The notes beneath the pieces were generated by a model. That model was given only the letters and a program-made list of their open reading frames with translations. It ran no database searches and had not been told where the DNA came from. From positions 124,001-188,000 of IMG/VR virus record IMGVR_UViG_3300050821_002957: DNA of 64,000 nucleotides. One strand, given 5' to 3'. Both the position numbers and the translations under genes were made by a program. Numbering within the stretch: position 1 is the first letter of the stretch; each line of letters starts with the position of its first letter. Shown one piece after another: positions 6,209-60,276 of the stretch.

Positions 6209-6285
6209 TGGTAGCGGATCTAGGAGTCGAACCTAGTATCTCAAGGTTATGAGTCTTGAATGGTTGTCCGTTCCACTCACCCGCA
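6209..6285 (-). tRNA. tRNA-Met(CAT), initiator-like (1:72 mismatch)
   Basis: Loop CTCATAA, CCA end, U1/U72 mismatch. Confidence 0.85.
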
Positions 6286-7000: not shown

Positions 7001-7135
7001 AGAGCGAACAAATATGTAGGTCTCCGCTTGTAACTACCGCCCGGACGCAATCAATATTACTACTGACTGCGGTATGGAATCGAACCACATCGCCTTTTTT
7101 GCAGAAAGAGAACAGAAACCCAGGCGGCTCACTCT
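7001..7135 (-). ncRNA. Y RNA-like ncRNA, copy 6
   Basis: GUGAGCCG/UUUGUUCGC stem; T arm UGUGG UUCGAUU CCAUA; closed acceptor-like stem; TTGACA/TATTCT and CTAAATA promoters directly upstream. Confidence 0.72.
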
Positions 7136-7175
7136 GACTTATTTAGAATACCACACCCAGTCACAGTGTCAAGTA

Positions 7176-13127: not shown

Positions 13128-14426
13128 CTACTGTGCCTGACCCTGATAGCTGGCCGCATCAATCGCAGCCGCCGCAATCTCTTCAGACGACTTTCTCAGT
13201 GTCTTCTTTACCTTCACCGGAGCCATATCTTCCGGCAATCGAAACGCAATGCCCTTGGCGATTTGCGGCAAACCATCGTGGCTGAAGCCCTGATACTTCA
13301 CCGTCAACTGCTGACCGAGATACTTATCGGCTTCCAAGAACAACTCAGCACGGTCGGCCAACGTTCCATTCGGCACAACAAAGAACACACCCGGAACATC
13401 ATCACGATAGGCCGTCTTCATCAAGTTGCCGGTTTTTTCTTTACCTTCCAGGCTGAACCCAGGAACCACACACTGCCAAATCACACAACCGGCATGACCA
13501 CCTTCGGCCTGCTTGAAACCAACAACCTCGAACTCGGCATCTTCAAAGAGCTTGATCTTCAACAAATTCTTCGAGCGCACACCGGACTCATACTTGCCAT
13601 GCTTATTCCGCAACATCGAACCTTCAAATTTACTCTCGATGCATTTCTCTTGAAAAGCCAGCACTTGCTCTTCGTTTTCCACTTCCAACGTCAAAACCTT
13701 CACCAGATGCGGCGTACCAGGATCAGCCGTCATCCAATCGCCCGGAACCAACGCAACCAAATCGGCGATGCGCTGTTCCTGAATGCGATCTTCTTCACCT
13801 TCGCACATTGGAACGTCATAAATGTGAAATTCCAATTTCTTCGACTCAGGATAATTGTTCGACAACCACTTCTGAATCGTCTGCCGCTTTACACCGTGAA
13901 AATACATCTCGCCGTCAAACATGGCGTCACGAGGCATCACCTTTTCCAACTGCGCCTTGATGTGCGGAGCCTGCCATTCCTTGCCGCCACGAGTCATTAA
14001 GACGATCCGGTCGCCGTCCCAATACGCTAGACACCGGGCACCATCCAACTTCGGCTGCACGAACGCCGGATACTTCGCATAACGATTCGTGCTCTTTGCT
14101 GGCCCACGTTCTTTATCAATGAACTTTTCGTTCGGAGCCAACATCACTTCGATCTTCCGGGTCACGCCGACGTTTTCGACGCCGACCACGTACTTGTGCT
14201 CAACCTTGTGCTTCCATTCGGCGACGGCTTCATTTTCAGCCTGAATTTCCGGGGTAGTTGCATTCGCTTTTCCCACGTTCTTGGCTTCACATGCCCGTCG
14301 ATGGGTGATCAGCTTGCCACCGACCTGTCCAGCTTCGATTACAATCTCATTGCCTTCGGTCCAAATTCGCCACTGAAGCAAAGCTCCAGTCGAACTCTTT
14401 CGATAAAGTGTTGGTAAAGTGTCCAT
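13128..14426 (-). CDS. ATP-dependent DNA ligase
   Basis: QPKLDGARC, FDGEMY, EGSMLR, LLKIK and LTVKYQ motifs; start at MDTLPTL after a TATAAT promoter. Confidence 0.93.
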   Translation of the reverse strand: MDTLPTLYRKSSTGALLQWRIWTEGNEIVIEAGQVGGKLITHRRACEAKNVGKANATTPEIQAENEAVAEWKHKVEHKYVVGVENVGVTRKIEVMLAPNEKFIDKERGPAKSTNRYAKYPAFVQPKLDGARCLAYWDGDRIVLMTRGGKEWQAPHIKAQLEKVMPRDAMFDGEMYFHGVKRQTIQKWLSNNYPESKKLEFHIYDVPMCEGEEDRIQEQRIADLVALVPGDWMTADPGTPHLVKVLTLEVENEEQVLAFQEKCIESKFEGSMLRNKHGKYESGVRSKNLLKIKLFEDAEFEVVGFKQAEGGHAGCVIWQCVVPGFSLEGKEKTGNLMKTAYRDDVPGVFFVVPNGTLADRAELFLEADKYLGQQLTVKYQGFSHDGLPQIAKGIAFRLPEDMAPVKVKKTLRKSSEEIAAAAIDAASYQGQAQ

Positions 14427-14516
14427 GCTGAAAATTATACCACACGCAGACAAAAAGATGCAACTACTTGCGAACGTTTATTTTAGGGGAACCGAGAATC
14501 AGGACGATTTCGGCGG

Positions 14517-14600
14517 TTACTGATGTCGATGAACCTGCACACCAGTCCCCACACGTTCTTGCTGTTGCTCGTGTTGGTGTTGATGTGTCATGTTCTTCAC
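14517..14600 (-). promoter_or_regulatory. His/Gln/Glu-rich leader mini-ORF (MKN)MTHQHQHEQQQERVGTGVQVHRHQ*
   Basis: TATAAATA (14606-14613) 5 nt before GTG; hairpin after the stop; upstream of Glu, Glu, Gln, Gln, His tRNAs. Confidence 0.65.
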
Positions 14601-15525
14601 GTTTTTATTTATACAGACAAACAAATTTGGTGGAAGGTCTCTCAGCCATATGGGTGGTATACGTGCCTTCCACCATCCATATCGCACCCTGGTCGTCAAA
14701 GAACCTTCCAGGATCACAGGGTTAATTAGTGTTCCAAAAAGCCTTACAGCCAACCCTGTATCTTTTATACCACTTCTTTTTCAGGATGTCAAGCACCAAC
14801 CAAAAAAGATTTTATATCTGGGTTTTGGATTGTTTAGCGGCTTGATGCTGCCATCTGTGTTGATCTTGATTATGCGTTCGGTGTCTGCCATTATGTTCCT
14901 TTTTTGACGCATCCACATTTTCTCCAATGTAGATGTCCATTACCATGTAGACACTTCACGCAACCGCACGAAGGACGCTGCCAAAGCTCATTGCCATGAA
15001 TGCATTTTACAGGCATCGGCGTCGGAAGTGCCTTGAAATGAAAAAATTTTCTGAAACGATCACGCATCGCCACAGTTCGAGGATCACCCAGGTCAATTTT
15101 ATTCAGATAATCAGCCATCAAAAGTGCAAAGGGCATTATTCCTCCGCTTGTGGACCCAGAAGAGCTTCGATCACAGCCGGATCATTGGTTGTGCTGATAA
15201 TCATATCGGGAATCTGACAACCACTTCCATCGTCATCTCGTGCATCAGGTTTGAAAACGAGAACAGCAGTGAGTCCATTTTGACCTGCTTCTTTGATCAG
15301 ATCGAGATATTCTTGATATGAGGTCATCCATGATCGTAATTATACAACAGGGATGAAAATAAATCCAGGCTCTTGATTAGTTATTTGTTGGTAGACGATC
15401 AGTGCTTCGTTTGGTGTCAAGGAGTCATCAACGTAAACGATAGGGCAAATTTCTTTGGCTTTCACAACATCATCAGAATGACAGATGATGTATTTAACGA
15501 GTGAAGGTGAGGCATTCATAAATTG

Positions 15526-15599
15526 TGGAGCCGGGGCCGAGAATCGAACTCGGGGCTGATCATTACAAGTGAACTGCTTTACCACTAAGCGAACCCGGC
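15526..15599 (-). tRNA. tRNA-Thr(TGT)
   Basis: Loop CTTGTAA, CCA. Confidence 0.93.
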
Positions 15600-15822
15600 G
15601 TATTAGTCCTCAAATTCTACCGTACCATCATCGACATCACTGACAGCCATCGTAACCTGAACGAGCCGATCATTTTCATACCAACGAAGCGTAACAAGAG
15701 AACCTTGAATGGTTACGCCTACGCCGGTCGAAACGAGCTTCTTCCGCATCGCTTCAATAATATCATTAGCGACTGGCTCAACGAATTTTGTTTTTCCTAC
15801 CCACATAAAGCACTTCAAAAAT

Positions 15823-15900
15823 TGGCGGGGTGTGTGGGGCACGATCCCACCATCTCCAACGTGACAGGCTGGCGTCTTAGACCATCTCGACCTACACCCC
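15823..15900 (-). tRNA. tRNA-Asp(GTC)
   Basis: Loop CTGTCAC, G73, CCA. Confidence 0.9.
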
Positions 15901-15980
15901 GTTTACGAACAAAATCAAAACTGCTACAACTAATCCAGCAATAATGCGAACCAAGGATCATTTTCTGGCATTTGAAAATT

Positions 15981-16055
15981 TGGCGGGGCGTAGGAGAATC
16001 GAACTCCCATTTTCTGATAGACAGTCAGATATCGTAGCCGTTGGAACAACGCCCC
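15981..16055 (-). tRNA. tRNA-Asp(GTC), second divergent copy
   Basis: tctga-CTGTCTA-tcaga anticodon arm (unusual U37), CCA. Confidence 0.85.
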
Positions 16056-16062
16056 GTAAGTG

Positions 16063-16115
16063 TGCCGGGACGATTTCTCTCCCGGCAGTTAATCTGATGT
16101 CTGTGTTCGTGTCAT
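16063..16115 (-). promoter_or_regulatory. leader mini-ORF MTRTQTSD* (16089-16115) plus 8-bp hairpin (16063-16087)
   Basis: TATAATA-N4-ATG; three ACA codons and a GAT; directly upstream of the Asp, Asp, Thr(TGT) tRNAs. Confidence 0.6.
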
Positions 16116-16353
16116 ACTGTATTATATAGTCTCACACATTTTCCGATCTGTCAACTCTCATCTAACAATTCCAACAAGGTTAGCGCCAAACCAATCGGAC
16201 CCAAAAGAAAAACCACAATGCTCGCACCGATTTGAAATGGCACACTGTAGATGCTCTCAAGATCTGTAAAAGCAAATTTCCGGCCTTCACGACGAGCGAT
16301 CAACCACATGACCACGAAAGTCATACCACCACATGAGAACCACAAGAACCAAT

Positions 16354-16851: not shown

Positions 16852-17691
16852 TCATCGGTTCTCGAATCTGTCTTCAATTTCACGGACCAAATCAATGAAT
16901 CCCGGCATTCTCTTCACATCTGGGTGCCACATGAAACCCAATTCGATCATGTCCAATGTATCGACAATACGTGCGCCAGGAATCTCATTACCGGCTACGT
17001 CACGTTCACGATCCATAATCCATACCGTATCTGCAATCGCCAAAGCCGAAGGAATGTCATGCGTCACCATAATGATCGTATTTAAATCATCCTGGTTCGC
17101 AACTTCCTGAACGAGCTTCGCCACTCGATTCTTGTTCTTTACATCCAATCCGGCAGTTGGCTCATCCATCAACAAAAAATGTTCTGAGCACAAAAGTTGC
17201 TGGGCAATGGCGACTCGCTGTCTCTGACCACCAGAAAGTTGCGCCGGATATAATTCAGCCTTATTGACCAAATCAAAACGGTTCAGCATCTCCATGCATT
17301 TTTCGTAACCATTCTTTTCGTTGCATCCGGTCTGCTTCACCGAAACCATCAGATTGCTCATGACGGTACGGTTACGATACAGATAATACTGCTGAGAAAC
17401 CATTCCGACGAGGCCAGGAGCGACCGGAGTACGACCATGCCCCAAGTATACATTGCCTGTCGTCGGCTTCTGAAGCCCCGCCAGAATGCGAAGAAACTGG
17501 GTTTTACCGATGCCTGATGGTCCGAGGAAAGCGATAATCTGCCCGGTCACGTCATTGGCAAGCTCAGGCCGGATCAAGTTGTCGATTTTAACGTTGATGT
17601 CTCGAAGAATTAAATTCGATCCATACGACAACGAAACATTCTCGACGGAGAGAAGCGTTTCTGTTCTTGCATATGACATGACGGCACCCAT
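16852..17691 (-). CDS. ABC transporter ATP-binding protein (NitT/TauT type)
   Basis: Walker A GPSGIGKT, signature LSGGQRQR, LLMDEP, VTHD. Confidence 0.95.
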   Translation of the reverse strand: MGAVMSYARTETLLSVENVSLSYGSNLILRDINVKIDNLIRPELANDVTGQIIAFLGPSGIGKTQFLRILAGLQKPTTGNVYLGHGRTPVAPGLVGMVSQQYYLYRNRTVMSNLMVSVKQTGCNEKNGYEKCMEMLNRFDLVNKAELYPAQLSGGQRQRVAIAQQLLCSEHFLLMDEPTAGLDVKNKNRVAKLVQEVANQDDLNTIIMVTHDIPSALAIADTVWIMDRERDVAGNEIPGARIVDTLDMIELGFMWHPDVKRMPGFIDLVREIEDRFENR

Positions 17692-18544
17692 TAAAAGTGG
17701 TTTCCCCAGCGGATGTCTTGCATAACCTTGATAGCTGCTTCGACACCAGCGTGTTTTGTAACCGCCTGAGCTACATCGTCGATCAAGCCACCGATACTAT
17801 GAGCATTTTCGGACTCCGCACGCTCATTCAAGTCTCGGACAATTTTTGCGAGCTTTGTTTCTGGTTTCATTTTCATCCTCCAAAAGTTTCTGTGTACAAC
17901 TGACGAATCTCCATCAAAGTAGTCTGGCGAGAATCCCAATAAGCCAAATTAAAACAAAATTCCTTTTCCAAATTTTGCTTACACTCCAATATCAGAGCAT
18001 CAAGCGTATTCCGAAATAGCACTTTTGGATCTGGTAGGCTCACTGTCTTCTTTTGCCCTCTACAAATTTCCTCGCCGCATTCGGAACCCTTCCAAGTTGC
18101 ATTGACGGTTGATCGGCGCTTTACCGTATGCCCACAATCCAAATACAAAGTCCAGTTACAATATCCACTATACCCTGGTCGCTGCACTTCAGGAAAATCA
18201 GGAACCGCCCGGACAACTTTCCGATACCGGCCCTTGGTTCTCATTTCTTTTTCTTTCCTGGCACAATGATATCTTTCAAAGGAATCCAGATCGAATAGCT
18301 ATCAAATTGAACTTCGATAACTTCTTGTCCAAGAGTCCGTACCGTTCCTTTGACAAGAAGTTTACTCCCAGGTCGGCCCTCTTTCAATTGCGAAAGTTCC
18401 CGTTTGGTCATTTCTTTTTCGCCTTTTCTGCTTCATGATATTGTATCGCTTCAGCCACCACTTCTTCGACATCTGCTACCTTCATACCACAGCCAAGAAG
18501 TTCTGTGACCAAATCCCAAAGACGATCTGATGGAGAAATTATGG

Positions 18545-19405
18545 TCATGAGCGTTCCATTCCTAGGCTGGCGTAAGGACATGCTAGTTTCTTGATGTACT
18601 TGATTACCGCATCCTGAAAGAATCCAATGAGCATGATGACAAAGAGAGCACAGAAAACCCGGTCGAGCTTGAGGTACTTGTTCTCAATCTCCATCATCGC
18701 ACCAATTCCACCTTCATCACGGAAACGACCTTCGACCATCGGAAGCATCATCCATCCCATCGCCACATTGACTGCTATGATGTCGATGACTTGATCCATC
18801 GTTCCCAAAACAACAACTTCCCAGACCACTCGCCATTCACTCATACGAAGTGTCCGACTGTGATCAAACAAATCTTTCGGAATATTTTCAATCATTTTAG
18901 TCAGACTCAAAACTGTGAAGACACCCATTCCAAAAACTAAGAGCGCAACTTTCACGTCGGCATGACTATGAAAAACAGACATGAACACAATCGGCAGTCC
19001 GACAAATCCATTAAAACGACCCAGGCTTACAATTTTCGCCAATGCTGCCCCGGCTGGCGTCACACTCAAAATTGAAAGTGGATACGAAATCGAGAACATG
19101 ATAGCGATTGATGTAAGATTCAGTTGCATCGAGTCCCACAGTCGAATCCCCATACCTTCTTGGAACCACAAAACCGGGAACGCCTGAATCACTTCCATTG
19201 GAGAAGGAAGATACTTGGCTCCAAATGAAATCCAAGCAAAAACCATCATGCCGATCCAAGCACAGATCAAGAGAATTTCAGTTGATTGATTTCTGACGCT
19301 ATTTGGGGAGATCCAATGCATCACCTTCAGCTTACGCTTGACCGGCGTCTTTGGCGTCATGACTACGACAGTTGTGTTCACGGCATCCTTCTTTACTGAA
19401 AGCAT
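18545..19405 (-). CDS. ABC transporter permease (SsuC/TauC-like)
   Basis: Multiple TM segments, YLPSP motif, EAA-like loop (DLFDHSRTLRMS). Confidence 0.85.
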   Translation of the reverse strand: MLSVKKDAVNTTVVVMTPKTPVKRKLKVMHWISPNSVRNQSTEILLICAWIGMMVFAWISFGAKYLPSPMEVIQAFPVLWFQEGMGIRLWDSMQLNLTSIAIMFSISYPLSILSVTPAGAALAKIVSLGRFNGFVGLPIVFMSVFHSHADVKVALLVFGMGVFTVLSLTKMIENIPKDLFDHSRTLRMSEWRVVWEVVVLGTMDQVIDIIAVNVAMGWMMLPMVEGRFRDEGGIGAMMEIENKYLKLDRVFCALFVIMLIGFFQDAVIKYIKKLACPYASLGMERS

Positions 19406-19782
19406 TAATTTCTCTTGTCCGACAAAGTGTGGCGTCCTCGAATTCTAACGTTCATTTTGCTCTCGATTTCATCTTCAATTTTGCCGACTAACTCTGTCAC
19501 TGTATCACGATCACAAGAAAAGGCAAATCCCACTTTACTGTGCGAGGGGCCGCAATTAAAAACAATTTCATATGTGTGAGATAGTTCATCCGTCTCAGGA
19601 TTTTTGTATGTCGAATAAAGAGTAATCGTATCAATAATCCCGCCAGCCATCTCCCACAAAATTTTAAGAAACACATTGGTGTCCCACTTTCCAGGATCGG
19701 TGAGAACAAAACAAATATCTCGACTGATCTTGGTGAGTGAACCGGCAGCAATAGGAACCTTGTTCAATCCAATGTATGTCAT
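19405..19782 (-). CDS. stand-alone ferredoxin-fold anticodon-binding (FDX-ACB) domain protein
   Basis: ISRDICFVL...IIDTITLYSTYKNPET..SHTYEIVF...VRIRG resembles the PheRS C-terminal domain. Confidence 0.6.
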   Translation of the reverse strand: MTYIGLNKVPIAAGSLTKISRDICFVLTDPGKWDTNVFLKILWEMAGGIIDTITLYSTYKNPETDELSHTYEIVFNCGPSHSKVGFAFSCDRDTVTELVGKIEDEIESKMNVRIRGRHTLSDKRN

Positions 19783-19830
19783 GTGATTCTCCTATGAAGG
19801 GAGCCTCCCAAAGGAAGACTCCCAATTCAT

Positions 19831-21693
19831 TTACTGCTCGATGGTGCCGAGAACGATTTCGACACGGCGGTTCAATGCACGCTCAGAAGGTGAATTCTGA
19901 TTTGCGTTCGGATGAAGAGGCTCTTCCTGACCATGAGCGTAGGTGCGAACGATGTTCTTCACACCCTTGTTCTTCAGGTATTGAGCAACCGAATCTGCAC
20001 GAGCCTGAGAAAGCGTAACGTTGGCATCGGCATTTCCGGTATTGTCGGTATGGCCGTGAGCAGCCACGGCGTACTTGGTCAATACGATGTCATCGGCGAG
20101 TTGATTCAACACACCGTAAGAAACCGGCAGAATCGTAGCGCTGCCAACCGAGAACTGAATGCTGTAGTTCTTACGGCCTTCAATGCTCGACATGGACTTC
20201 GTGGACTTCGTGACCACGACATCTTCGGCATTGTTTGTCGGCAGAACATTCTTCGCAGCAACCGCAGCCACATATTGCGTATCCAAAATTTCTGAAACCG
20301 CAGGATAAGTCGCCATGATGTTAGGATACTGCTGGACATCGATCTTACCGAAAGTGTTGTACGTGGCAGCAAAAAGATTCACGCCGCCGTTCAAACCGAA
20401 GGACTGCATCGCATCGGCAAGATTGGCAACAGAAGAACCACCGAGATGGACACGAACACCCAATGCATCCGGTTCAGTAACACCCTTGTAGTATCGAACC
20501 CAATAATCCGCCGACTCTTCGTTATAAAGAGCGTAAGCGACCTTGCCGTATTCGGTCAAAGCTGCCGGATTCACACGCATCTGATCGGCACCCTCGAAAG
20601 CTGCTGACAACATCTTTACGATGTCTTCTTTGTGAGCACGATCCCAGCGACGAAGGCCGATAAGCACACAAGGCATCTGGAATGCAGACTGTTGAGTGGT
20701 CATGATCGGCACGACTCCACCCTTCTTCTTCGCCACAGTCACGTCACCGGGCGTCCAGGTAACCACGGCATCGGCACATTTATGAATCTTGCCGCCACCG
20801 ATGCCCTTTACAGTGAAGTCAGCACAGGCCACGCCGTTTGCGAAGTCCGCTGCCGCATCAGTATACGATTTGGAATCAATCCAGTTCATCGCAGTCTTGT
20901 CGTAGGTGTTAGTGTCCGGGTTATTCGGAATGTTGCACTGACCCAACTTCTTCAGAGCGATATTCCAGTCGCCGTCACGAAGCACGCCAACGGTCACACC
21001 GCCACGCATTGCTTCACAGTTGTTCTTCCACTCTGCCGGTCCCCAGAAACCATCCTCACCACGGCTGTAACCGATAGTAGCGATAACTTCTGCAATCATG
21101 TCGGGTGCGATCTTCGCCAACTTCGGATTGATCGTCGCAAAGAAAGCCGGATCGCCATCACCCATGTCCGTAATGAACTTCACACCGCTGGCATTCGGGT
21201 CACTTGCAAGACGCTGCGCTGTATCCAACAGATCAGCTTGCATCTGATTGGTGTCATCCTGACGAGTGATACGAACGTTGACGCCATACTTCTCCATCAA
21301 CGATCCTTTGCTGGTCTGAATGAACTTGGATTTACCGCTCTGCCCAACAGAGCTACCAACAGCATAGTCCAGACCGCCGTTCGCATTCCAGGCCCATTGC
21401 TCGATCTCATGAACGGGGCCTGCAATGCAATTACGAATGTTGCCGTCCATGCATGGCTGAACTGCCGTCGAAGTCGGAAGCGGAGCCGCCTTCACGTTGC
21501 CGGGGTTGGTTTCGAGCACATTCGCAGTGATCTCTTCGGCCTTGACCGGGATGTAAGCCTTCAGTGCGTTCGGGCGAGGGATGAGTCCAGTGTAGACGGC
21601 ATGACGATAGCCGAATACCAGACCACCAACCACAAGCAAGAACAAAATCAGTTTCGGTAGCGGTTTCATTTTCATATGTTTGTTCCTTTTCAA
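19831..21693 (-). CDS. ABC substrate-binding protein fused to a C-terminal OmpA domain
   Basis: N-terminal TM anchor, YSRGEDG motif, C-terminal GHTDNTG..N..LSQARA..NRRVEI. Confidence 0.9.
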   Translation of the reverse strand: MKRNKHMKMKPLPKLILFLLVVGGLVFGYRHAVYTGLIPRPNALKAYIPVKAEEITANVLETNPGNVKAAPLPTSTAVQPCMDGNIRNCIAGPVHEIEQWAWNANGGLDYAVGSSVGQSGKSKFIQTSKGSLMEKYGVNVRITRQDDTNQMQADLLDTAQRLASDPNASGVKFITDMGDGDPAFFATINPKLAKIAPDMIAEVIATIGYSRGEDGFWGPAEWKNNCEAMRGGVTVGVLRDGDWNIALKKLGQCNIPNNPDTNTYDKTAMNWIDSKSYTDAAADFANGVACADFTVKGIGGGKIHKCADAVVTWTPGDVTVAKKKGGVVPIMTTQQSAFQMPCVLIGLRRWDRAHKEDIVKMLSAAFEGADQMRVNPAALTEYGKVAYALYNEESADYWVRYYKGVTEPDALGVRVHLGGSSVANLADAMQSFGLNGGVNLFAATYNTFGKIDVQQYPNIMATYPAVSEILDTQYVAAVAAKNVLPTNNAEDVVVTKSTKSMSSIEGRKNYSIQFSVGSATILPVSYGVLNQLADDIVLTKYAVAAHGHTDNTGNADANVTLSQARADSVAQYLKNKGVKNIVRTYAHGQEEPLHPNANQNSPSERALNRRVEIVLGTIEQ

Positions 21694-29515: not shown

Positions 29516-30943
29516 ATGAATTTTGAAACTTTGAAGCACACAAACTATGGGGCAACTGTCGTAACGCTCTCGAAGTTTGTTGCATTGGAAAAGGGTGATG
29601 GTGGCCGTCAGGCGTGCGACAACGTGAAAGCTGCGTTGATTTTTGGTATGCAGGTTATCGTCAGCAAGGATGTCGAAGCTGGTTCGGTAGGTCTGTATTT
29701 CCCTGCGGAGACTGCGCTGTCAGCAGAATTCCTGGGTCAGAACAACCTCTATCGCAAGGCCGAGTTTGGCAACACCGATCCCGAAAAGAAGGGATTTTTC
29801 GAGCAGCATGGTCGTGTCCGTGTCGTGAAGTTCCGTGGTCACAAGTCGGAAGGCTTCTGGATTCCGCTGGACTCACTCAAGTATCTGGGCCTGCCGCTGT
29901 CGGAATTTCCAGTTGGTGCTGAATTCGATTTTGTGAACGAACACGAAATCTGCCACAAGTACATTCCTCGCCGTAACCGGGTGTCGAATCCTTGTGCGCC
30001 TCGTGGCCGTAAGGCTCGTGTCGAAGACAAGCTGGTAGACGGTCAGTTCCGTTTCCATATCGATACGGCGCAGCTTCGTCGTAATGCTCATCGTATCGAA
30101 CCGGACACGTTAATCTCGGTGTCTGAGAAGTGGCATGGTACGTCGGCCATCTTCTCGAACATCCTGGTAAAGCGTGATCTGGCGTGGTATGAGCGTGCGC
30201 TGAAGTGGCTGGGCACGAAGATCCAGGAATACGAATTCGGTTTCACCTGGGCGTCTCGCCGTGTTGTGAAGGGTGTGGATGGCGAAGCAAAGAAGGATGC
30301 CGTTCATTTTTACTCGACCGACATCTGGGGCACGGTCGCAAAGGAAGTCCAGGAATTCATTCCGAAGGGCTTCACGATTTACGGCGAAATTGTCGGCTTT
30401 ACGCCGGATGGTGGTGCGATCCAAAAGGGTAAGACTGGTGTTTACCATTATGGTTGCCAGCCGGGTACGCATCGCTTCTTGGTGTATCGTGTCACGTCAA
30501 CGAACTACGATGGTAAGGTCGTAGAACTGGCGTGGCCGCAAATGAAGGAATTCTGCCGCAAGTACGGTCTCGAAATGGTCAAGGAACTATACTATGGCCG
30601 TGCGGATGGATTCTTTCCGATGGATCGAGTTGAAGCGTTCGACAACGAAGGCTATTCAATCGGTAATCGCAACATGACGCTCGACGAATGGCAGGAAGGT
30701 TTTGTCAAGGCGCTTGAAAAGGCGTTTGTCTATGACCAGATGTGCCAACACAACAACATGGAAGTTCCGGCAGAAGGTGTCGTGGTCCGTGTTGAACGCT
30801 ACGACGAATGCGAAGCCTTCAAACTGAAGTCGTTCCTGTTCCTCCAGCACGAGTCTGATCAGTTGGACAAGGGCGAACTGGACATGGAAACGGCAGAAGC
30901 CGAAGGTGGCGCTGACGAAGTTACGGAAGGCGCAGAAGCATGA
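29516..30943 (+). CDS. RNA ligase, DRB0094-like (N-terminal OB-like domain)
   Basis: VKFRGHKSEG, EKWHGTS, IYGEIVG, EGVVVR and FKLKS motifs. Confidence 0.85.
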   Translation: MNFETLKHTNYGATVVTLSKFVALEKGDGGRQACDNVKAALIFGMQVIVSKDVEAGSVGLYFPAETALSAEFLGQNNLYRKAEFGNTDPEKKGFFEQHGRVRVVKFRGHKSEGFWIPLDSLKYLGLPLSEFPVGAEFDFVNEHEICHKYIPRRNRVSNPCAPRGRKARVEDKLVDGQFRFHIDTAQLRRNAHRIEPDTLISVSEKWHGTSAIFSNILVKRDLAWYERALKWLGTKIQEYEFGFTWASRRVVKGVDGEAKKDAVHFYSTDIWGTVAKEVQEFIPKGFTIYGEIVGFTPDGGAIQKGKTGVYHYGCQPGTHRFLVYRVTSTNYDGKVVELAWPQMKEFCRKYGLEMVKELYYGRADGFFPMDRVEAFDNEGYSIGNRNMTLDEWQEGFVKALEKAFVYDQMCQHNNMEVPAEGVVVRVERYDECEAFKLKSFLFLQHESDQLDKGELDMETAEAEGGADEVTEGAEA

Positions 30944-59060: not shown

Positions 59061-59214
59061 TGATACTACAATCACTAAAACAATTTTTGGGACGCATTAT
59101 GTTTTAGTCTCCTTGGGATGTTCCCTTCGGTATTTAGTTGCTAGAATATTTCTTCCGGCATAGGAAAATTTTATAAGGTATTGACAGGATACGGGTCTTG
59201 TGCTATAAATAGAG

Positions 59215-59490
59215 TCGTAGCAGATAGTCGAAGTGAACGAAGAACGCTTCTTGGACATGGGTTCAATTCCCATCGGCTCCACCAAAATTCTGATTTTAGG
59301 CATCAGAGAACTTATGGGGCCGCCCCGGTTTCGACAGGATGAGATGTTGCGTAAGCAGGGCTACCGTGGTCCTTGTCCACGTTATCCAGAAGGAATCATA
59401 AACGCTAATGCACCTGCATTTGCTTTCGCTGCCGCTGCCTAAACAGCGCTCGAACGAAGTCGGAGAACTTTGTTAAAGAACTCCCAACAG
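59215..59490 (+). ncRNA. ssrA: two-piece (circularly permuted) tmRNA, tag ANAPAFAFAAAA
   Basis: T arm and CGGCUCCACCA (ends 59284) precede GGGGCCG...GGUUUCGAC (starts 59316); G3.U70 pair; tag ORF 59404-59442; TTGACA/TATAAA promoter upstream. Confidence 0.92.
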
Positions 59491-59521
59491 AAGGCCGGGG
59501 CAACTCGGCCTTTTGCTTTTT
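59491..59521 (+). terminator. intrinsic terminator after the tmRNA
   Basis: aaggccggg-gcaa-ctcggcctt hairpin followed by a T run. Confidence 0.85.
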
Positions 59522-59681
59522 GAAAGGTTGTGTTTATGAGACGACATTTGAAAATGGTCCATCACCACGGCAAACGAGCACTAAAGTCTAAGTACGGACA
59601 GGTGTTCATCATCCTGTGGTTCGTGCCGGAAGCCATTGCACTTTTTGGTTTGATATGGGCTGCATGGCGACACCTTGTAAA

Positions 59682-60032
59682 ATGAAGTTTCTTCTGTTCA
59701 TTCTCTTATTCTTCGCATCAAGCGCCTGGGCCGCAGAGAAGCCTCTTGTCGAAAAATGCTTCAAAGTCCAGTCTCTCATCAAGGCAGATCCAGAGCATTA
59801 TTGGGCTACCTGGAAGAACGCCTGTCCGTACATCATTGACTCGATCTACGTAAACGTCGATTTCAAAGACAAGGCCGGAAGCATTCTTGGACATGGAGTC
59901 TGGTCGCTACATTATGTCAAACCGGGCGAGGGCCGCTACATTCGATTCTCAACTCCATCCTTGACAAGTGACTATTTCTCTGTTATCTTAAAAGAGATTA
60001 CTTTGGACGCTTTCAAAGCTCTACGGTACTAA
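59682..60032 (+). CDS. secreted hypothetical protein
   Basis: Signal peptide MKFLLFILLFFASSAWA. Confidence 0.6.
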   Translation: MKFLLFILLFFASSAWAAEKPLVEKCFKVQSLIKADPEHYWATWKNACPYIIDSIYVNVDFKDKAGSILGHGVWSLHYVKPGEGRYIRFSTPSLTSDYFSVILKEITLDAFKALRY

Positions 60033-60040
60033 ATACGAAC

Positions 60041-60104
60041 ATGGTACGTTTTTCCACCATCACGACAAGCACTACCACGACCGTCTAGTTCCTCTAGAAC
60101 GGTC
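60041..60104 (+). promoter_or_regulatory. thrL-like leader peptide MVRFSTITTSTTTTV* (60041-60088) with hairpin (60079-60104)
   Basis: 7 Thr in 10 codons; CTAAATA-N5-ATG; 35 nt upstream of two tRNA-Thr genes. Confidence 0.8.
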
Positions 60105-60123
60105 CACTTCCCATTTCAATTAA

Positions 60124-60199
60124 GCCGAATTAGCTCAGTTAGCAGAGCGCCGCCCTCGTAATGCGGAGGTCATGAGTGCAACTCTCATATTCGGCTCCA
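60124..60199 (+). tRNA. tRNA-Thr(CGT)
   Basis: Loop CTCGTAA, CCA; atypical T loop TGCAACT. Confidence 0.9.
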
Positions 60200-60202
60200 A
60201 AT

Positions 60203-60276
60203 GCCGCCTTATTTCAATGGTAGACTCTATCTCTGGTACAGATAGGATTTGGGTTCGATTCCCAAAGGCGGCTCCA
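60203..60276 (+). tRNA. tRNA-Thr(GGT)
   Basis: tatct-CTGGTAC-agata anticodon arm, CCA. Confidence 0.9.

Follow-up and report, generated by a model that had tools for sequence, protein, structure and literature searches.

Short open reading frames (ORFs) at the 5' end of operons are textbook sensors for amino-acid operons. In the leader-peptide transcription attenuators of amino-acid operons (trpL, hisL, thrL, leuL, and pheL) and of pheST (pheM), a very short ORF is enriched in codons for the amino acid or acids relevant to the operon, as in thrL, which uses Thr and Ile, and an RNA hairpin lies next to the stop codon. In tnaC and in mgtL and mgtP of Salmonella, a ribosome held on a leader ORF controls access of Rho to the downstream RNA without an intrinsic terminator, and in ermC-type systems a ribosome stalled near the 5' end stabilises the mRNA. 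T-box riboswitches bind uncharged tRNA directly through a specifier codon and a T-box bulge, without translation. Full-text literature searches found no description of leader peptides in front of tRNA genes, in phages or in cells. Here we describe a set of tiny leader ORFs in a 405-kb soil phage whose codons mirror the tRNA genes downstream, suggesting that the phage senses tRNA supply.

The analysed stretch of 64,000 nucleotides (the window) corresponds to bases 124001-188000 of a single 405,631-bp virus record. The genome has 46% GC, 44 tRNAs grouped by amino acid (Arg/Lys/Ile/Val, Gly, Pro/Leu/Ser, Val/Met, His/Gln/Glu, Asp/Thr, Thr, Tyr, Asn, Trp, and Ala), and a permuted tmRNA, and it carries a DNA ligase, an RNA ligase, and pst-like ABC transporter genes. 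The DNA occurs in soil metagenomes. No close phage was found in GenBank, the best ligase match being at most 35% identical, and exact-pattern searches of IMG/VR and JGI recovered only the same phage and one relative.

The first-pass annotation had pointed to a mini-ORF encoding MTRTQTSD upstream of tRNA-Asp and tRNA-Thr genes, in which the three Thr codons are ACA, read by the downstream tRNA-Thr(UGU), and the last codon GAT matches the two Asp tRNAs. It had also pointed to a 10-mer, GAAATCGTCC, shared with the leader of the His/Gln/Glu cluster, and to a common string after the two stops. This observation is correct as written. The features of the two loci, and of a third leader in the window, are as follows.

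16121-16154, minus strand: sigma-70-type promoter of the Asp/Thr leader, with TTGACA (16154-16149), a 17-nt spacer, and TG-extended GACTAT (16131-16126) overlapping TATAAT (16126-16121); the ATG lies 5-10 nt further on, so the mRNA is leaderless or nearly so.

16089-16115, minus strand: leader mini-ORF MTRTQTSD-stop (ATG 16115-16113, stop TAA 16091-16089), in which Thr is ACA three times and Arg, Gln, Ser, and Asp are CGA, CAG, TCA, and GAT.

16064-16086, minus strand: post-stop hairpin with a 7-bp stem (5' arm GCCGGGA 16086-16080, 3' arm TCCCGGC 16070-16064) and a 9-nt loop (16079-16071), containing the 10-mer at 16077-16068 and followed by an 8-nt spacer.

15526-16055, minus strand: tRNA-Asp(GUC) 16055-15981, tRNA-Asp(GUC) 15900-15823, a small ORF, and tRNA-Thr(UGU) 15599-15526, identified with ARAGORN and Rfam.

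14517-14591, minus strand: His/Gln/Glu leader ORF MTHQHQHEQQQERVGTGVQVHRHQ-stop, preceded by a TATAAAT-type -10 box at 14613-14607.

14486-14550, minus strand: three-helix RNA structure of the His/Gln/Glu leader. In P1, GGGG 14550-14547 pairs with CCCC 14489-14486. In P2, 14546-14540 pairs with 14525-14519, which includes the last codons and the first base of the stop. P3 is the post-stop hairpin 14513-14492 with loop GTCCT, and contains the 10-mer at 14511-14502. TTCCCC and an A-run come next.

13128-14463, minus strand: ATP-dependent DNA ligase gene (Pfam PF01068) with its own promoter (TTGCAT 14463-14458, TATAAT 14439-14434), ATG at 14426, and a leaderless mRNA; tRNA-Glu, Glu, Gln, Gln, and His lie downstream (13083-10551).

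60041-60104, plus strand: Thr leader ORF MVRFSTITTSTTTTV-stop (60041-60088), with a hairpin at 60079-60104 that overlaps the last codons and the stop, a promoter at 59961-59989, and tRNA-Thr(CGU) and tRNA-Thr(GGU) at 60124-60276.

The Asp/Thr hairpin folds far better than shuffled sequence (-16.7 kcal/mol, z = -3.8, 1 of 200 shuffles as good), as does that of the Thr leader (z = -4.6). On composition alone, however, the MTRTQTSD ORF is marginal, with 4 of 7 codons being Asp or Thr (binomial P about 0.003-0.008, rank 4 of 319 mini-ORFs tested), and it becomes convincing only through its conservation in relatives.

To determine whether the 10-mer shows a common origin of the two hairpins or a shared trans-acting factor, as had been proposed, its occurrences were counted. 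It is found twice in the window against 0.25 expected, both copies on the minus strand, and 2 of 100 shuffles reach two copies. Genome-wide it occurs 4 times against about 1.5 expected under Markov models of order 1 to 4, and the other two copies lie inside long ORFs of 245 and 173 aa. The 10-mer spans loop plus 3' arm in the Asp/Thr hairpin, but 5' arm plus loop in the His/Gln/Glu hairpin. Relatives (lineages of related uncultured phages, here numbered L007 to L022) change it at both sites: the Asp/Thr hairpin of L021 has GAAATGCCCC, the His/Gln/Glu hairpin of L007 has GAATCCGTCC, and other relatives are unrelated there. The part conserved at the Asp/Thr site (AGAAAT loop) and the part conserved at the His/Gln/Glu site (closing pair and loop C-GTYCT-G) are different halves of the 10-mer, so that its identity in this phage looks like a coincidental juxtaposition. 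Both leaders do read TAA then C(T/C)GCCG, but this reflects a shared architecture, a GC-rich hairpin base 0-5 nt after the stop. A shorter ATCGT motif after the stops, judged by eye, is present in 3 of 8 leaders and is not conserved in relatives.

The interpretation given with the observation is thus partly supported: the mini-ORF is a leader tied to the downstream tRNAs, whereas we find no support for a shared factor or origin, and the match of ACA to tRNA-Thr(UGU) is weakened. The Trp and Asn leaders are also Thr-rich, and match Thr best, without any Thr tRNA downstream, and L021 keeps the three ACA codons although no tRNA-Thr follows in the 15 kb examined. Thr-richness is generic to the leaders that begin MT, and only the Asp codon or codons look specific to this cluster. 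The CA-rich start ATGACAC is shared by the Asp/Thr, Trp, and His/Gln/Glu leaders and may serve initiation on leaderless mRNA. The neighbouring ligase gene supports that possibility, since its ATG lies 6-7 nt after its -10 box in our phage and in five sequence-distinct relatives, which indicates that an ATG at the transcript start is usable in this system.

To place the two leaders in context, mini-ORFs upstream of every tRNA were listed, and both were found to belong to a set. Besides MTRTQTSD, the leader peptides and the tRNAs that follow them are:

MRRITITRREVKRKR: Lys, Arg, Ile, Arg, Val, Lys

MKNVLLSTPSSSPLTVVGLPLSPSSLPSLLS: twelve Pro, Leu, and Ser tRNAs

MTHQHQHEQQQERVGTGVQVHRHQ: the ligase gene, then Glu, Glu, Gln, Gln, His

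MVRFSTITTSTTTTV: Thr(CGU), Thr(GGU)

MTLYYYT...: Tyr

MTYTTYNT: Asn

MTRTFTYW...: Trp

An unbiased scan of all 319 ATG mini-ORFs lying up to 1.5 kb upstream of a same-strand tRNA ranked first the Pro/Leu/Ser (22 of 30 cognate codons, P = 2e-8), Thr (7 of 14, 7e-6), Arg/Lys/Ile/Val (11 of 14, 4e-5), Asp/Thr (4 of 7, 3e-3), and Tyr (3 of 15, 5e-3) leaders. Against the phage's own amino-acid usage the binomial P values are 1e-10 for Pro/Leu/Ser, 2e-8 for His/Gln/Glu (14 of 23 codons), 2e-5 for Arg/Lys/Ile/Val, and 3e-5 for Thr. At least five tRNA clusters (Pro/Leu/Ser, His/Gln/Glu, Arg/Lys/Ile/Val, Thr, and Tyr) are preceded by mini-ORFs enriched in the cluster's own amino acids. The true pairing of the eight leaders with the eight tRNA sets is the single best of 40,320 permutations. 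The match extends to codons. The Pro/Leu/Ser leader uses all six Leu codons and codons for every Ser and Pro tRNA in its cluster; the Thr leader uses ACC, ACT, or ACG, which the two downstream tRNAs read, for 6 of its 7 Thr codons, while the Asp/Thr leader uses only ACA (one-sided Fisher test on this split, calculated by hand, P = 0.03). Many tRNAs of the genome (Gly, Val/Met, Cys, Ala, Ile, and others) follow protein genes directly and have no convincing leader. As a further control, two unrelated tRNA-rich phages were explored and nothing similar was found: the T5-like phage S124, with 27 tRNAs, gave a best P of 0.06, and the Thr-tRNA trio of Streptomyces phage Comrade has no such ORF.

Relatives were reached through ligase homologues that are 44-77% identical; they are few and not independent of each other. 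The His/Gln/Glu leader is present upstream of the ligase gene in all 8 lineages. Length differences come in whole codons, both ends stay H/Q/E-rich although individual positions change, and the core ERVGTGV is kept through synonymous changes (CGT to CGG, GTG to GTT, and GGG to GGA). RNAalifold on 6 and on 8 sequences found the three helices; in P3 both sides changed with pairing kept in up to 5 of 8 sequences per pair, whereas P1 and P2 are mostly invariant. The Pro/Leu/Ser leader recurs in the 370-kb relative (2 lineages in total). From codon 6 onward the changes are four synonymous, one cognate-to-cognate (Leu to Ser), and one cognate-gaining (Thr to Ser), while the first five codons vary, with one cognate Leu lost. 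A synonymous change in the last codon is matched by a change in the hairpin's 3' arm. A search for homologues of the protein next to the Thr leader returned none.

The Asp/Thr leader is found in 4 lineages, each time behind the same promoter block and ahead of tRNA-Asp. The block (TTGACA ... GAGACTATATAA) is conserved in L016, L021, and L008, and as GTACTATATAA in L017. L016 encodes MTRTQTSDN, its first 24 nt being identical to ours; L021 encodes MTRTQTSDR, with one synonymous change (TCA to TCG); and L017 encodes MTFTRTTSDDTDIV, with three Asp and five Thr codons (8 of 13 cognate, P = 6e-6). The 5 nt after the Asp codon have diverged completely, yet an in-frame stop is always present there, and although the stop position differs the hairpin starts 5 nt after the last Asp codon in all four lineages. 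L016 shows one compensatory G-C to A-U change plus a stem extension, while L017 has an unrelated stem. In L008 the same promoter runs straight into tRNA-Asp with no ORF, and L007 and L022 also lack the leader. The element is therefore an accessory, not something that tRNA processing needs. We consider it likely that the Asp/Thr element is a conserved functional unit.

In six of the eight leaders a stable hairpin starts 0-5 nt after the stop or overlaps it or the last codons; in the Tyr and Trp leaders the hairpin starts inside the ORF, well before the stop. No U-tract follows any leader hairpin, in this genome or in the relatives, although the phage does use a canonical hairpin-plus-U terminator after its tmRNA. 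RNA-library contigs run from inside two leaders, through the hairpins, into the tRNAs (15869-16105 and 60059-60206), but their depth is only 2-6x, they carry no strand information and no usable transcript ends, and DNA carry-over cannot be excluded. Pairing of the hairpin's 3' arm with the 5' acceptor strand of the first tRNA was predicted for the Asp/Thr leader in our phage, L021, and L017, but it is absent in L016 and in the Thr, Tyr, and Trp leaders, and was dropped as a general mechanism.

Taken together, these data suggest, more likely than not, that the MTRTQTSD ORF with its hairpin is one member of a family of translated leader mini-ORFs, at the 5' ends of tRNA transcription units in this phage and its uncultured relatives, that act in cis as sensors of cognate charged-tRNA supply. 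What the analysis establishes is the ORFs, their match to the clusters, their conservation, the hairpins next to the stop, and the lack of U-tract terminators; translation, stalling, the direction of control, and the effector step, including any dependence on Rho, are inferred without direct evidence. In this view, a ribosome would stall on the sensor codons when the supply is short. The mRNA entry and helicase site of the ribosome lies about 11 nt downstream of the first P-site base, so a ribosome with the last Asp codon of the Asp/Thr leader in its A site would sit flush against the intact hairpin, and ribosome plus hairpin would cover almost the whole 60-nt leader. We infer, with low confidence in this particular step, that such occupancy changes the fate of the precursor, most plausibly by shielding it from Rho or from 5'-end-dependent RNases, and that phage tRNA output would then rise when the cognate tRNA is limiting. 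Several findings weigh against the model. Co-transcriptional control looks kinetically hard for a 60-nt leaderless transcript, and the His/Gln/Glu leader is separated from its tRNAs by a ligase gene that has its own conserved promoter; the failure to find a terminator/antiterminator pair or a U-tract, the generic Thr-richness, the ACA codons kept in L021 without a downstream tRNA-Thr, the tRNAs without leaders, the lineages that lack the Asp/Thr leader, and the few, non-independent relatives also count against it.

A more far-reaching and tentative reading is a phage-encoded homeostatic circuit, in which each cluster of phage tRNA genes would be headed by a translated "codon sampler" whose ribosome occupancy reports the supply of exactly those charged tRNAs and sets the cluster's output, through a ribosome-against-hairpin geometry rather than a terminator/antiterminator switch. 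It could serve as an automatic response to host tRNA depletion or to anticodon-nuclease defence, and would be the first leader-peptide control of tRNA genes. Large phages carry many tRNAs whose regulation is essentially unknown. If the leaders work as proposed, they show a virus measuring the decoding capacity of the infected cell codon by codon and topping up only what is short, which bears on phage codon adaptation, on counter-defence against tRNA-cleaving host systems, and on the design of tRNA-responsive genetic switches. With leaders of 8-31 codons and matched tRNA clusters that can be moved directly into reporters or cell-free translation, the set is also a compact, testable system.

Among the alternatives, all of which we consider unlikely, the one that survives best is that the ORF is a chance open frame and the hairpin just a processing or stability element of the pre-tRNA 5' leader, translation playing no part. 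The marginal enrichment of the ORF alone is in its favour, as is the transcription of the same tRNAs from the same promoter without it in L008. However, four lineages keep an ATG-to-stop frame that ends at the hairpin base despite the diverged 5-nt spacer, the L017 version is strongly Asp/Thr-rich, and the architecture recurs at seven other clusters, with highly significant matches for Pro/Leu/Ser, His/Gln/Glu, Arg/Lys/Ile/Val, and Thr. Slightly less likely, the conserved 24-nt block could be an untranslated RNA or DNA element, such as an initial transcribed sequence or a binding site. All third codon positions are conserved between phages whose ligases are only about 50% identical, which is more than amino-acid coding requires, and the ATGACAC start is shared between leaders. 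This does not explain the in-frame stop kept next to the hairpin, the extra Asp codons in L017, or the synonymous and cognate-swapping changes in the other leaders, and conservation at the codon level is also what a codon-specific sensor predicts. It is also doubtful that the mini-ORFs encode small peptides functioning in trans, with a composition unrelated to regulation of the tRNAs. The amino-acid conservation of ERVGTGV would fit, but the leaders are 8-31 residues of low complexity, their composition tracks the neighbouring tRNA sets (although the Trp and Asn leaders match Thr best), and the sensor parts tolerate swaps between cognate residues. The 10-mer as a site for a trans-acting factor or mark of common origin is very unlikely on the counts, positions, and non-conservation given above, even though within L017 the two leaders also share an ATCG..TTC-like string; with 8 leaders there are 28 pairs in which such a match could have been noticed. 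Equally improbable is classical trp/his-type attenuation, suggested by a short ORF with regulatory codons followed at once by a stable hairpin, since no leader hairpin is followed by a U-tract, no alternative antiterminator pairing was found, the phage has a canonical terminator elsewhere, and the RNA-library contigs read through both hairpins.

Relative to described leader-peptide sensing, what is new here is the target (tRNA genes), the setting (a very large phage), the multi-amino-acid "codon sampler" leaders, and the inferred non-terminator output. Like the trp/his-type attenuators, the phage leaders are short ORFs enriched in regulatory codons, highly significantly so for the Pro/Leu/Ser, His/Gln/Glu, Arg/Lys/Ile/Val, and Thr leaders and marginally for Asp/Thr in this genome. 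They differ in that the genes downstream are tRNA genes (with a DNA ligase gene in the His/Gln/Glu case) and not genes that make or charge the sensed amino acid, and in that several of the mRNAs appear leaderless and lack a Shine-Dalgarno sequence. Nor were mutually exclusive terminator and antiterminator pairings found: the Asp/Thr leader has a single hairpin, no alternative was found to the three-helix fold of the His/Gln/Glu leader, and folding with the 5' arm masked gave no consistent alternative across leaders. No T-box or any other Rfam family matched either leader at the gathering threshold or at E up to 5 over 14400-16200, although the logic, with the state of a specific tRNA feeding back on genes of the same decoding pathway, is that of a T-box. 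Compared with the Rho-dependent tnaC and mgtL type, seven of the eight leader ORFs are C-rich and G-poor like rut sites (0-12% G in the sensor part), but the codon identities themselves bias composition, and the Arg/Lys/Ile/Val leader is G-rich, which weakens a general Rho model; the leaders are moreover short (60-190 nt) and followed by highly structured tRNAs. As in ermC, a ribosome stalled in a short 5' leader ORF next to a hairpin could protect the transcript from 5'-dependent decay, but in erm systems the stall is induced by a drug and a nascent peptide rather than by a shortage of cognate tRNA, and the output is the translation and stability of a protein-coding mRNA.

A Thr-rich leader ORF was observed on the plus strand of the window, and its Thr codons are mostly those read by the two tRNA genes that follow it. 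The hairpin that overlaps its stop codon gave a fold z-score of -4.6.
Window 60041-60104, plus strand: Thr-rich leader ORF MVRFSTITTSTTTTV with a hairpin overlapping its stop, followed by tRNA-Thr(CGU) and tRNA-Thr(GGU).
In the relative L017, a mini-ORF with three Met codons in its first five was found 28 nt upstream of a run of tRNA-Met genes, and it may be a Met leader.
L017 9375-9423, plus strand: mini-ORF MRMRMSNLDASVPSF.

The region just before the His/Gln/Glu leader harbors a strong promoter that drives a non-coding stretch of roughly 150 nt, ending in ...CCTTCCACCA.
Window 14620-14792, minus strand: promoter (TTGACA 14792-14787, TATAAA 14769-14764) and non-coding stretch.
At this place the relatives L015 and L017 carry a tRNA-like element that appears to lack a T arm and is closed by a 7-bp acceptor-like stem. 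These elements were not called by ARAGORN, and an Rfam search, which covered the window's copy but not those of the relatives, did not find any match. A similar promoter plus structured RNA precedes the Arg/Lys leader at genome position about 7060-7160. Rfam found an extra tRNA (39.6 bits) next to tRNA-Val that ARAGORN did not report.
Window 6212-6285, minus strand: extra tRNA found by Rfam.
Upstream of the Ala tRNA pair, outside the window, we observed four tandem copies of a 10-nt unit (gtttcgttct).
Genome about 295,440-295,490, minus strand: tandem 10-nt repeats.

The start codon of the DNA ligase gene lies 6-7 nt after its -10 box in this phage as well as in five sequence-distinct relatives, which implies a leaderless mRNA and hints at a host that translates leaderless messages well.
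Window 14424-14463, minus strand: promoter and ATG of the DNA ligase gene.
The phage also carries pstB-like and pstC-like ABC transporter genes and an OmpA-domain protein, and in the 370-kb relative the ABC ATPase gene is interrupted by an intein-like Hom_end_hint/LAGLIDADG insert.
Window 16852-21693, minus strand: ABC transporter genes and OmpA-domain protein; 4416-6347 of the relative L007: interrupted ABC ATPase gene.

The phage encodes a permuted (two-piece) tmRNA with the tag ANAPAFAFAAAA, a TATAAATAG-type promoter, and a canonical hairpin-plus-U terminator at 59488-59515.
Window 59192-59533, plus strand: permuted tmRNA.
The sequence TATAAATA[ACG] occurs 10 times in the genome, with five copies at tRNA leaders and one at the tmRNA. 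An RNA ligase gene (PF09414) is also present.
Window 29516-30943, plus strand: RNA ligase gene.
Together with the 44 tRNAs and the tmRNA, this gene suggests investment in repairing or replacing damaged tRNAs.
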